Notes: generated by a model not told the origin, from the sequence alone. Counted from the first letter of the stretch, positions 37,463-45,671 are shown. The stretch is DNA of 64,000 nt from Fimbriosthenelais zetlandica (GCA_977030845.1 OZ365115.1:17298001-17362000), one strand, 5' to 3'. Numbers and translations: made by a program.

Positions 37463-40400
37463 ATGTTGCCTGAGACGCCTAAAGAATCGCCCAACTCATC
37501 GCCTCATGCAGATCTTAATGATGCGCTCATTAACGTGGATCTGCTGTGTAAGCTTCCCTTACCACCCCGGCTGAATAGCGACACGACGACAGAAAGCGGA
37601 GACTGGGAATTTTACTACCAGGCCAGCACAGATGTCCTGGCTGATCTTACCCAACTTTTCACACTCATTCCACAGCGATACTTCAATGAGGTCAAATCCC
37701 ATAAACAATTGGTGAGAATGCACTTGCATCAATTATTATCTCAATATTGTTTTTCACATTTTCTAAAATTGTCTTTATATAAATTAAAATAGCTTGCCTA
37801 AATTACATTTGACTTTGAAGAGATTTTCTTCAGGTTAAGGTTTATTTTTCATTACTTTGTATTAATCATTATTTTTTAATAAATTGTATTAATTTATTCA
37901 CAGGTCGGCCTGGCTGAGGAGGGGAAGCAGTTGGCCCTCATGCTGTACAGTTGGAGATGCTGCAGTATTGCTGTTCCTCAGGTAATAAATATAGTATAAC
38001 AGGGTTTCTGTGGAATTATTGAAGTATTACATTAGTTAAATATCGACCAATTCGTAGTATCGACAAAAGAACGTCTTATTCTATTCTAGATCAAGTCACA
38101 TAATCAGCCAAATAGAATGGAGATCTATCAAAAAACCGTTGACGTCCTGGGACCAGAAATAGACAAAATCAGGAAGTTCATGACATATCAGGTACATTAT
38201 AACAAACTCTTTTATTATTGCTTTGTTCCTTAATTAAAAACCCCAAACAGTAGAATCTATTCATCTTGAGAATTTGTCATTGTCATGCTAAATGTGGATA
38301 TAATTTCGTAGTAATTTGTGCAACAATTATGCAGAGATCAGCCATGGATTGTGTGAAGGGAGAACTCCAACGTTTGGTGCAGGCAGATGAAGGGAAATCA
38401 GAATATGTCTCAGACATATACTACTTCAGCCTTGCCAGATTACTAGACGCCTTTGCTGTACTAGAAGAAATCAAAACCATCAAAACTAGCCTGCGAAATG
38501 ACTATTCTACCTACAGACGGTCAGTATAAACCACTCAAATAAAACATATTCTAAAACATGATAGTTTACATATTTTAAAATCAAATGAAAAGAAATATTT
38601 TGAATATATCAAATAAAAGACATGGAATATAAATCTATAATATAACAGCTTTCTTGATTCATATTTAGAGCTGTAGAGATAGTAACGCGGCCTGATGCTG
38701 AGGCTACAAAGGAAGCTCAGGAGATGTCCATTTTCCTTGGTACCCACAATGCATTCCGAACCTTCCTCAAATGTAAACTTCAGGACGTTACTGGTCATGA
38801 GGATATTATCATTGACCTCGTCAACGCCTGTCTGCGCATGATTGAATCTGATCATTACATGTACCCCGAGGAGAAATACATGCTTGTCAGGGTAGGTCAA
38901 TTGTCAATGTCCGGTGAAGATTCAATGAATATTTTCAGGCTATTCACCTGATTTAAATAATAAATTTATATTCTTGTTCGAGTTCAAGTGCCAAGGTTTC
39001 TAAGTCTTGATCATTGCTTATGTTATTGGATATTATTTTACAGGCTATTGGGTTCAGTATTTCTCTCATTGATGGACCGAAAGTGAATATCAATAAACTG
39101 GAAGGCAAGAGGAAAATAAACCTCACGAAAGTCGACAAACTATTCAAGGTGACAAACTAAATTAATGAATGCCAAAAACAAACATTAGTCTTCTTTTTTC
39201 CATAATTTCAAGCTTTTCACATGATTTAATTTTTCCATTTTTTCAGGAGTGTGAAGTTGTTCCTTTGTTCGGTGACATGGCCATCGCCCCCCATCGATAC
39301 ATGCAAACCTCGCCAAATTATGACGAGTCAAAATGGCCCTACTGTACGGACCCTGCCCGACCTGCCCTACAACAAGATATTACGTCACCAATACAACGTT
39401 TACGTACTGCACATGATCGCCTGCTATGTGACCTGGCCTTGGTAGAACGAGAGCTGCCAGAGGAGAAATTTGATAAAGGAGACAAAGTATGATATTCAAA
39501 GTTGTGTTTATAATATGGGGACACGAAAAGACCATTAAATATTTCATGAATTTCATCAGTTTGCTTCAATTTACAAAGACTAGGTTGACTGTTTCTAGGC
39601 TAATAAATATCTTTTTCTTTAATTCTATGGATAGCCTGAGGTAAAATGGCCAGGCAGTGACAAGGATAGGAAATTGAACCGTTTGGGATTAGATGTTTTG
39701 AGATATTTGTCAGAGGTCAGCTGCCGCATTCAAGAATTGGTAAGACATGTTTTAAAGATGTTAACGAATAGATTGAAACTATAATTGTTTTCTTCCGATT
39801 TTGCCCAATTTGTTATTCTGGTACTTAGCTAAAATTTCTTTTTCTCAAAGGTCTCATGGAAACTTTTGCATCCAACTGATATACGAGCAAATCCAAATTG
39901 CCCAGAAGATGCAGAGGAATATGAAAAGGTAGAGATGAATAATTTTAAATAGTCATTAATGACCTCTGATTGGAAAATTATCATTTTTTCAAATCTCCCC
40001 ACGAAATTGTCTATCCCTCATTTCAGGCTACAAGGTATAATTATAGAATGGAGGAAAAAAATGCTCTGGTGGAAGCCATTGCTTTGTTGAAAGGGGCTCA
40101 TGCTCAGGCTGTTCGGATGACCACCCGCATAGAGAAGGCTGTTAAACGCTGTGCTTATGCACAACTACAGGAACTGGTACAGCGCTGCATACGGCATGCC
40201 ATAAGAAAGTCCATCAAGCACAAGCGAGACATTCTTAAAGGGTAGGTATATAGGGGCCATTGCATAAATTACGATCTTATCTTCTCCTTAAGATCTTATC
40301 TTAAAAGTCGCATAGCCAATGCAAATCCAATAGGGGACATGATGGGGATACGAATTTCTGCAATGGGGGTATAGAATAGATTTAACACTCGTAGATGTAT

Positions 40401-43400: not shown

Positions 43401-45671
43401 ATTGTATCCCTATGTTGAGGCCTTGTTGAGAGTGATGCCCAAGCGATGTATTATGCCAAGATTCGAGTATGGATCTTCAGGTAATAATCATACCTTTTTC
43501 AGCCTTAATTTAGCATATCCTGACATCATGGGGAACATGTGGACATTTCATTTTGTTATTCATTTGCTTCTAGGCATCCTTGGGTACTACTTGGCCCAAC
43601 TGAATGACATACTGCTATACAGTGACCTGCAACCAAAAGTATTCCAGGGACTGAGGGAGATTGGTAATGCAGTCGTTTTCTGTATGCTCGTATCGAAGAC
43701 TCTGGTATGTTCAAATCCATGGATATATATATATCCGTGCCCTTAATTGCCTGTTAACACATTCACAATTGTATTATTGCCCTCAAAATATCTCCTTTTC
43801 AGTCCACAGTGGAGGTGTTTGAGCTGAACCAAGCTGCCCCATTCCAACATGTCATCCCTAAACCATTGATACCAAAGAAGGACAAAGGTTAATTTCAAGT
43901 TTATGGAATTAGAGAGCAATATAGTATGTAATTCTTCAAAGAAACATATAATCAAATGAAATTAAATAGGCTCATCAGCTTCCATTTTCTTTTATAGAAA
44001 AGATGAGTGCAGAGGAGAAGGAGGCCTTCCTAAACAGGACATTGAGGCAGCTAGAGGCCAAGTACAAACACATCCACGTTTCTGCTGTTATCAGCAGTTT
44101 GGGTGGAGAAGACGTAAGCATAGTTTTATAATTCAATTCATTAACATTTACTAAGGAAATACGAGAAAATCCAAGGGAGGACTAAGCAGTTAAGTGAACC
44201 CATTTTCATTGAAATCAACATTTCAGGACCGGAAGTTGGTAAAACAAGCTGACGTCATCACCAAGGAGAAGCTATGTACTGGTCTCTCCGTATTCCAAGC
44301 CACTCTGAAAAATATGGCCACCTTCTTCAAACAACCACTGTGGAAAGGTGAAGTACATGCGGAGAAGGTGGTGGTTGACGACTCACAGTCCTTCTACAGA
44401 ATATGGTCTGCCATACAATTCGTGTATTGTATGCCCAAGAGAAGTGCCAACGAGTACACTGTTGAGTGAGTCAATTCTCTACATAAATGTGTTAATTTTC
44501 TCCAATAGTCATGTATACACTATGTAATATATTCACCTGGATATATGCCACAATTAGAACGCATTAGGCCTATATGACTGAGTTATCATTCACAGTTATG
44601 CCGGTCCCACACAGAGGCGATTTGCCCAAGCGATGGAGAGCGATAGTATATTTCTAGTCACAACCAATTCTGGAAATTTTAAGGCCTTTAAACCTAGCTA
44701 AGGCTAACCACTGACAAAATTACAAGCATTGGGTGTGACTAGAAATATACTACCGCTTTGGATCGCTTGGGCAAATCGCCTCTGTGTGGGCTCGGCATTA
44801 GAAGAATGCTGACAGATATAACTTTATTTCATTGATAGGCAACTATTCGGAGAGGGTCTACAATGGGCAGGCTGTACCATCATAGCCCTGCTTGGTCAGC
44901 AAAGGATGTTTGAAGCTCAAGACTTTGGTTATCATCTCCTCAAAATCAACCGAGTCGACCAGAAACAAGAGACCCTCAAGGGAGTGGTAAGGGCGGAAAT
45001 TATAGTACTTTATGTTGAACGAAATCCCAAAGGACATTATTATATATTAAGTGTTTCATAAACCATAAATGTACCCTGAATGTCTAGGCATTTTTATATT
45101 ATATATTATATATATATTTTATATATTAGGATTATATTACAATGATAATCCATTGTTAGTCGAAAATAATAAAATATCCACTACCTTAGATCAATTATAA
45201 CAGGTAGTGGAGGGAGATAGCCACTAATCGACCAAGTGAGACAATAAAATATCCACTACCTTAGATCGTTTATGTCAGGTAGTGGAGGGAGATAGCCTCT
45301 AATCGACAATGTGTGAAAGTAAAATATCCACCACCTTAGATCAATTACAACAGGTAGTGGAAGGAGATAGCCTCTAATCGACCAAGTGAGACAATAAAAT
45401 ATCCACCACCTTAGATCAATTACAACAGGTAGTGGAGGGAGATAGCCTCTAATCGACCAAGTAAAATATCCGTTAACTTGTTAAATTTCAGGATATGAGG
45501 AAAATGGTGGACAGAATCCGCAAGTTCCAGATCCTAAACAACCAGATATTCCAGGTGATCAATAAGTATGGTGAATCTGGAGGAGTTCCAGACCCCGTCA
45601 TCATCAACATCCCACCCCCGAGTGCTGATAGGTCCACTGTGGTGCCAGACTCAGAGGAAAGTCAGGCATAG
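37463..45671 (+). CDS. cyfip: Divergent CYFIP/Sra-1/PIR121 family protein (WAVE regulatory complex subunit-like), 1284 aa
   Basis: 27 GT-AG exons, all in phase, total 3855 nt: 37463-37711, 37904-37981, 38090-38191, 38335-38519, 38669-38891, 39044-39148, 39247-39486, 39635-39739, 39851-39928, 40027-40241, 40468-40609, 40703-40853, 41082-41238, 41355-41451, 41598-41674, 41770-41878, 42021-42140, 42581-42780, 42901-42988, 43129-43272, 43390-43480, 43574-43704, 43803-43887, 43998-44113, 44227-44465, 44839-44986, 45492-45671. Family motifs: [87 protein letters not shown]. The start ATG is inferred; the exon acceptor is at 37424. Confidence 0.93.
44599..44797. mobile_element. MITE family A' (same core as family A, different TIR)
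   Basis: TGCCGGTCCCACACAGAGGCGATTTGCCC...GGGCAAATCGCCTCTGTGTGGGCTCGGCA, flanked by TTA on both sides. Confidence 0.87.
45171..45470. repeat. 75 bp tandem repeat, 4 copies plus a partial, each with an internal hairpin; last CYFIP-like intron
   Basis: aaaatatcca starts at about 45171, 45246, 45321 and 45396. Each unit holds CCAC(T/C)ACCT...AGGTAGTGG. Confidence 0.92.

Follow-up and report, generated by a model that had tools for sequence, protein, structure and literature searches.

The Divergent CYFIP Gene and Its Exons

Rac activates WAVE-driven actin assembly through the subunit CYFIP/Sra1, which is among the most conserved regulators of the cytoskeleton. The window analyzed here is a stretch of 64,000 nucleotides from Fimbriosthenelais zetlandica (G000:C25:17298001-17362000, in a 447-Mb assembly of 79 contigs), and positions 37463-45671 of its plus strand are occupied by what, judged from its sequence, is a real protein-coding gene and the second CYFIP/Sra1 paralog of this genome, hereafter called the divergent CYFIP. 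Together with an ortholog in another species, it is to all appearances a member of a real, conserved and fast-evolved CYFIP subfamily, apparently undescribed, as no account of a divergent CYFIP paralog in annelids or in invertebrates generally came up in full-text literature searches.

On the plus strand, short open frames with clear CYFIP motifs are seen across the interval. The exons were called with a purpose-written protein-to-genome spliced aligner, which was checked on the genomic loci of three annotated CYFIPs; its output was identical to the Ridgeia and Saccostrea proteins and differed from the Owenia protein at a single residue. Three different CYFIP references led to the same chain of 27 exons, which begins with an ATG at 37463 and finishes with a stop codon that ends at 45671. 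The 26 introns (93-505 nt) are all of the GT-AG type, and the coding frame of 3.8 kb contains no in-frame stop and no frameshift. An initial annotation of the window had described 1284 aa encoded by 27 canonical exons with no disabling lesion; the exons, the splice sites and the open frame stand, but not the exact length, which varies between 1263 and 1282 aa depending on two ambiguous junctions, namely the exon 8 acceptor and the exon 24/25 junction. The ortholog favors the acceptor at 39641 and the 44102/44249 junction, yielding the preferred model of 1271 aa. In the 1 kb scanned downstream of the stop codon, the sole AATAAA/ATTAAA signal is found 590 nt away. The parts of the gene are the following.

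37463..45671, plus strand: whole coding span of the divergent CYFIP, stop included (spliced alignments; PF05994 exon matches)
37463..37711, plus strand: exon 1, with the ATG and a start reading MLPETP...; N-terminus very divergent (spliced alignment; the ortholog also starts with MLPETP)
37904..37981, plus strand: exon 2 (spliced alignment; likewise a 78-nt exon in the ortholog)
38090..38191, plus strand: exon 3, with the A-site residues Q95, R104 and Y108 (spliced alignment; site comparison)
38335..38519, plus strand: exon 4, A site, with N176T and C179T changed and N183, S186, R189 and R190 kept (spliced alignment; site comparison)
38669..38891, plus strand: exon 5, followed by an ancestral intron lost in the C37 CYFIP described below (spliced alignment; intron mapping)
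39044..39148, plus strand: exon 6 (spliced alignment; intron mapping)
39247..39486, plus strand: exon 7, the query that found the ortholog fragment P0312 (spliced alignment; word-indexed search)
39641..39739, plus strand: exon 8, for which 39665 is a second possible acceptor; a WPG..KDRK motif in common with the ortholog is kept in the longer form (spliced alignment)
39851..39928, plus strand: exon 9 (spliced alignment)
40027..40241, plus strand: exon 10, ATRYNY...; FragX_IP 51.5 bits; matches human CYFIP1 437-508 in 3p8c_A
40468..40609, plus strand: exon 11 (spliced alignment)
40703..40853, plus strand: exon 12 (spliced alignment)
41082..41238, plus strand: exon 13, the best conserved block; FragX_IP 81.7 bits; F626 kept, M632L
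41355..41451, plus strand: exon 14 (spliced alignment)
41598..41674, plus strand: exon 15 (spliced alignment)
41770..41878, plus strand: exon 16, homologous to human CYFIP1 residues ~720-755 (spliced alignment)
42021..42140, plus strand: exon 17 (spliced alignment)
42581..42780, plus strand: exon 18, pocket for the WCA C helix, with L841 kept and H842Y, F844C and W845L changed (spliced alignment; site comparison)
42901..42988, plus strand: exon 19 (spliced alignment)
43129..43272, plus strand: exon 20 (spliced alignment)
43390..43480, plus strand: exon 21, where the Rac1 D site begins, with K/R961 changed to I and P963, R964 and Y967 kept (site comparison)
43574..43704, plus strand: exon 22, remainder of the Rac1 D site, with G971, I972 and subsequent residues kept (site comparison)
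43803..43887, plus strand: exon 23 (spliced alignment)
43998..44102, plus strand: exon 24, whose donor at 44102 agrees best with the ortholog, the alternatives being 44086 and 44113 (spliced alignment)
44249..44465, plus strand: exon 25; FragX_IP 57.1 bits (spliced alignment; Pfam)
44839..44986, plus strand: exon 26 (spliced alignment; PF05994 search)
45492..45671, plus strand: exon 27 and stop codon (spliced alignment)

Family Membership and the Other CYFIP Loci

The Pfam family FragX_IP (PF05994) gives 13 exon-level matches on the contig of the window, C25, with E-values of 0.001 or better, and the best of them scores 89.5 bits against a cut-off of 23.3; the segment of human CYFIP1 listed above is the sole match of exon 10 to a solved structure. 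A six-frame search of the whole assembly with FragX_IP identified three loci, the one in the window and two others at C37:292-300 kb and C13:13.346-13.354 Mb. Thus, the second, conserved copy for which the initial annotation had called for a genome-wide search does exist, on C37, and is accompanied by a truncated, near-identical copy on C13.

The C37 locus (G000:C37:~291.5-304.5 kb, minus strand; L012, L014) holds a conventional full-length CYFIP, which is 83-84% identical to two annelid-type CYFIPs, 81% to that of Ridgeia piscesae and 73-77% to mollusc and arthropod CYFIPs. The C13 locus (G000:C13:13346615-13354362, minus strand; L011, L013) carries a copy of the C37 gene that is truncated at its 5' end and spans exon 9 (~aa 507) to the end; the preceding exons are missing there in the assembly. 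Compared with the C37 gene, 9 of 1740 exon bases differ (99.5% identity in exons) and the introns are 90-96% identical. The locus is either a segmental duplication of recent date or a haplotype left uncollapsed in the assembly. A further CYFIP, P0163, found on a 27.6-kb contig (ENA ERZ25070167), is 83% identical to the C37 copy and is encoded in one uninterrupted frame of 3783 nt; this may be a gene copy without introns, or the contig may derive from a transcript.

The divergent CYFIP aligns colinearly with the C37 CYFIP over 1231 aa, with 48.4% identity. Its identities are 48.3-48.8% to annelid-type CYFIPs and 44.6-47.3% to those of non-annelid animals and Owenia, including 44.6% to mammalian CYFIP1, to which the C37 CYFIP is 67.5% identical, and its distance from animal CYFIPs is about that of a choanoflagellate CYFIP from animal ones. 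The lowest identities to the C37 copy, of 21-35%, are found in the N-terminal ~90 residues and in several internal segments, and the segment homologous to human CYFIP1 ~720-755 is changed relative to conventional CYFIPs in the divergent CYFIP and in its ortholog. The N-terminal region aligns colinearly with CYFIPs, with R190, R104 and Y108 kept. A hand count of about 25 identities to human CYFIP1 in 62 residues of exon 4, offered by the initial annotation, was accurate, since this exon is 40% identical to mammalian CYFIP1 over 60 columns, as against 80% for the C37 copy. The accompanying proposal that the divergence is specific to this gene holds as well, because the conserved paralog in the same genome shows conventional identities, of 81-84% with CYFIPs of the annelid type and 67.5% with the mammalian CYFIP1.

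An Ortholog in a Second Species

A word-indexed search with exon 7 yielded a single match, P0312, a fragment of 77 aa with 54% identity that carries motifs specific to the divergent CYFIP and lacking in the conserved copy. It lies on a 2.6-Mb ENA contig, ERZ25767047:ctg38961_34x_l, which is unrelated to the contig of the window. The locus was assembled by walking along that contig to a total of 56.6 kb, the last step having been made with the 46-residue product of a GTG-started open reading frame (ORF) from L023 as the query. It contains a full-length gene that starts with MLPETP and has no stop before its terminal TAG. Most of its exons have the same lengths as those of the divergent CYFIP, and its introns are ~5 times longer. 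No synteny was found between the flanks of the ortholog and those of the window gene, over the short flanks compared.

The two proteins share 66% of their residues in an alignment of 1255 codons. The rate of nonsynonymous substitution (dN) is 0.22-0.24, and synonymous sites are saturated, with a synonymous rate (dS) of 1.5 according to LWL85 and a larger maximum likelihood (ML) estimate; 462 of the 833 codons for identical residues differ synonymously. The resulting dN/dS of 0.05-0.16 is similar across all computable windows of 150 codons. Because an intact ortholog goes together with low dN/dS and saturated synonymous sites, the gene is, on this comparison, functional and not decaying, and under purifying selection in at least two species. 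When a library of 1.84 billion cluster representatives was searched with exon 25, only conventional CYFIP fragments were retrieved, all of them closer to the C37 copy. In full-length searches with choanoflagellate- and annelid-type CYFIPs, the best 120 matches were all conventional, and divergent copies could not show among them.

Introns and Mode of Duplication

Introns were mapped in a five-way alignment with the CYFIP genes of Ridgeia (L016), Owenia (L017) and Saccostrea (L018). All but two of the 26 introns of the divergent CYFIP match Ridgeia, Owenia or Saccostrea introns in both column and phase. With 24 of its introns at ancestral positions, the gene arose from an intron-rich CYFIP ancestor by duplication at the DNA level, the mode that the initial annotation had proposed from the number of introns, and a processed retrocopy can be rejected. 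The divergent and C37 genes, which belong to the same family and have 17-18 intron positions in common, lie on different contigs and differ in that introns 5, 8, 11, 14, 19 and 21 of the divergent CYFIP, all ancestral and retained by Ridgeia, Owenia and Saccostrea, have been lost from the C37 gene. The presence of these six introns here and their absence from C37 also lead to the rejection of a recent copy of the present-day C37 gene.

Phylogenetic Position and Timing

In an ML tree that included the divergent CYFIP alone, it fell inside Lophotrochozoa with support of 99/99, on a terminal branch of 1.9 compared with 0.11 for the C37 copy. With the ortholog added, the two formed a pair (100/100) whose stem measures 1.33 substitutions per site, as against ~0.1-0.2 in conventional annelid CYFIPs, and whose tips measure 0.31 and 0.38. 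The pair nests with annelid-type CYFIPs (C37, P0163, Ridgeia, P0214, P0224) at 87/99, and the C37 CYFIP is among its nearest neighbors, in a group that the tree does not resolve further. Counted from the shared node, the divergent CYFIP has accumulated 1.64 substitutions per site and the C37 CYFIP 0.11, a strongly asymmetric outcome.

Approximately unbiased (AU) tests with the gene alone rejected a placement outside Bilateria (p = 0.003), and with it a pre-bilaterian paralog. They did not reject placements outside protostomes (0.18), outside lophotrochozoans (0.37) or as sister to C37 (0.34), and for the pair a position outside Lophotrochozoa was likewise unrejected (p-AU 0.21), so that the timing is moderately supported. 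The best reading of these trees is that an intron-rich ancestral CYFIP was duplicated, within annelids according to the ML tree, that a burst of protein change corresponding to the stem of 1.33 followed, and that the product then came under constraint, with purifying selection in at least two species; an older origin is less probable.

Such an older origin would make the divergent CYFIP an ancient lophotrochozoan or protostome paralog that was lost from most lineages, with no innovation in annelids, a scenario that appears improbable but deserves serious weight. It can draw on the unrejected placements outside Lophotrochozoa, for the gene and for the pair, and outside protostomes, and on the six ancestral introns that the C37 copy lost. 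A further argument comes from another lophotrochozoan, the oyster Saccostrea echinata (GCA_033153115.1), whose additional, second CYFIP-like gene (L019:36751-45801, JAVQLB010000056.1) lies in tandem directly downstream of its ordinary CYFIP and shows a FragX_IP match and a weak N-terminal domain match. The annotated product, of 1752 aa, also matches CD36, so that the annotation has probably joined a tandem duplicate of CYFIP with a CD36 gene. The statement in the initial annotation that CYFIP is usually single-copy in invertebrates thus admits exceptions, of which the oyster is one. However, the only exon of this oyster gene that was recognized in 10 kb, its first, is of the conserved type, unlike the divergent CYFIP. 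The ML tree places the pair among annelid-type CYFIPs (87/99), the highest identities of the divergent CYFIP are to annelid-type proteins, and the 1.84 billion cluster representatives yielded none of the divergent type; all of these points speak against the older origin.

Conserved and Re-fixed Functional Sites

For the WCA pocket and for E434, F626 and M632, we used the site assignments attributed to Chen et al. (2010). The roles of residues in the Rac1 A and D sites and in the tyrosine lock are from the cryo-electron microscopy study of Rac1 bound to the WAVE regulatory complex (WRC) (PMC9481577). Most polar contacts of the A site are kept in both species (Q95, R104, Y108, N183, S186, R189 and the arginine anchor R190), as are the D-site residues P963, R964, Y967 and G971, the tyrosine-lock residue R87, and E434, F626, L697 and L841; Y704 is present in the divergent CYFIP. 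At other positions of the same surfaces, the two species have the same change, namely N176T, C179T and F194I in the A site, K/R961 to I in the D site, and M632L, F686Y, L687M, F699L, H842Y and W845L in the meander/WCA pocket.

A similar picture is obtained over the whole protein. Among 332 columns that are invariant in 25 conventional bilaterian CYFIPs, 212 (64%) are kept in both species; 52 have acquired the same new residue in both, 21 have changed differently and 45 have changed in one species only. Many of the 52 identically changed columns are in the A-site and WCA-pocket segments. These shared replacements, together with the dN/dS of the pair, bear out the functional, re-shaped paralog that the initial annotation had envisaged. 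The retention of the fold and core contacts, with regulatory surfaces re-fixed, suggests that the protein works as an Sra1-type subunit but is controlled differently. From the substitutions that both species share on those surfaces, changes are predicted in the affinity or specificity for Rho-family GTPases and in the strength of WCA autoinhibition.

Partners and Possible Functions

Searches of the genome found a single NCKAP1/Nap1 locus (PF09735; G000:C25:32690581-32709073, minus strand), 15.4 Mb from the divergent CYFIP along one contig, and a single ABI locus (PF07815, Abi_HHR; C13:24.72 Mb). A wholly duplicated WAVE complex, which the initial annotation had raised as a possibility, is not supported, with one locus each for NCKAP1 and ABI; WAVE and BRK1 were not searched for. 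Any complex would therefore use shared partners. The divergent CYFIP would still fold as a CYFIP and most likely serve as an alternative Sra1-type subunit, which would pair with the single-copy Nap1/NCKAP1 and with Abi and WAVE into a WRC with altered control. The altered A site, D site and WCA/meander pocket would change the response to Rho-family GTPases and the WCA autoinhibition.

Taken as a whole, the data are best explained by a conserved, fast-evolved CYFIP paralog that acts as an alternative Sra1-type subunit of the WRC with altered control, an explanation that we hold to be somewhat more probable than its negation. The gene probably encodes a working, re-purposed subunit of the WAVE machinery and is no dying duplicate. 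A more specific version is put forward tentatively, with less than even confidence: an undescribed annelid CYFIP subfamily might provide a second kind of WRC built on the same Nap1/Abi/WAVE scaffold, in which re-tuned Rac A and D sites and a re-tuned WCA-holding pocket would give another Rho-family GTPase input or another activation threshold, in particular cells. Besides the unrejected placement of the pair outside Lophotrochozoa, some observations weigh against this general explanation. The positions of W845 and F686Y vary in choanoflagellates too, so change there need not alter function. In addition, no match to PF07159 (CYRIA-B/DUF1394) was obtained when the N-terminal exons were scanned singly, a scan of low power, since even the conserved copy went undetected at its N-terminus when the genome was searched exon by exon.

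The divergent CYFIP might also be a regulatory decoy, which would bind Nap1 and perhaps WAVE, respond poorly to Rac, titrate the single-copy partners, and thereby dampen or spatially restrict WAVE activity. We regard this as improbable. Both Rac1 sites do carry changes common to the two species, N176T and C179T are at positions where the mutations N176W and C179R abolish function (PMC9481577), the replacement of K/R961 by I removes a salt-bridge partner of the D site, and there are only one NCKAP1 and one ABI locus to share. On the other hand, a threonine at 176 and 179 is mild compared with the tryptophan and arginine of the tested mutants, and the anchors R190 and Y967 are intact, along with most of the polar A-site contacts.

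Alternatively, and with slightly less plausibility still, the paralog might have left the WAVE complex altogether, its CYFIP fold being reused, for instance in a free pool that controls translation, a role proposed for CYFIP1 together with FMRP/eIF4E, or as a CYRI-like stand-alone binder of Rho GTPases. The very long burst after duplication (stem 1.33) would fit such a departure, as would the poorly conserved N-terminal ~90 residues and internal segments (21-35% identity to the conserved copy), the change in both species of the segment homologous to human ~720-755, and the absence of a duplicated partner among the subunits examined, NCKAP1 and ABI. In contrast, the bilaterian-invariant residues that are kept (64%) are distributed along the whole length and include the WAVE contacts R87, L697, L841 and F626 and the cores of both Rac1 sites, and the uniformly low dN/dS across 150-codon windows indicates constraint beyond one domain. 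CYRI-A/B (FAM49) have in common with the CYFIP N-terminus the Rac1-binding DUF1394/CYRIA-B module and the arginine anchor (PMC9481577). They are stand-alone Rac1 binders of ~320 aa, whereas the divergent CYFIP is a full-length protein of ~1270 aa with a FragX_IP region; one CYRI-type gene is found in this genome, on C10.

The view that the duplicate is decaying or unexpressed, a pseudogene in the making with a frame left open by chance, has the very long branch in its favor but is hardly credible and is rejected, given a 3.8-kb frame over 27 exons without stop or frameshift and with every splice site canonical, a gene intact in a second species at saturated synonymous divergence and dN/dS of 0.05-0.16, and exon lengths conserved between the two.

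Surroundings of the Gene

Upstream of the divergent CYFIP, at 24479-26534 on the plus strand of the window, ankyrin-repeat and twin RING-finger exons are consistent with the 3' end of mib2, a gene named in the initial annotation, and they end ~11 kb before the divergent CYFIP. In this 11-kb gap, a run of overlapping ORFs on the minus strand (34279-35306) with repeated SSPYGMVPCLQR-like units looks like tandem-repeat DNA. A stretch of 144 N at 17307-17450 is an assembly gap or a masked stretch. In the first 2 kb downstream of the CYFIP stop codon, no further gene was recognized.

Comparison with Known CYFIPs and Significance

Human CYFIP1/Sra1, as known from the WRC structures 3P8C and 7USC/7USD/7USE, and the divergent CYFIP are equal in length, align colinearly, and have in common PF05994 and the residues R190, Y967, R87 and L697/Y704/L841. 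They differ by the low identity of the divergent protein to mammalian CYFIP1 (44.6%) and by its lineage-fixed N176T, C179T, F194I, R961I, M632L, H842Y and W845L. A second comparison is offered by CYFIP1 and CYFIP2 (PIR121) of vertebrates, where there are likewise two CYFIP genes per genome that arose by DNA-level duplication and were both retained under selection. The vertebrate proteins, however, are 86.7% identical by our measurement, with 88% reported (PMC9481577), and both build WRCs, whereas the two copies described here are 48% identical and have evolved asymmetrically.

Human CYFIP variants in the A-site and tyrosine-lock region cause epileptic encephalopathy. The rule of one CYFIP per invertebrate fails in annelids. 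Long under selection, with its Rac anchors kept and its A site, D site and WCA pocket changed, the divergent CYFIP may be regarded as a mutagenesis experiment performed by evolution on the tuning of WRC activation. It makes accessible to biochemistry the question of whether a swap of the Sra1 subunit can give one Nap1/WAVE/Abi scaffold different GTPase inputs.

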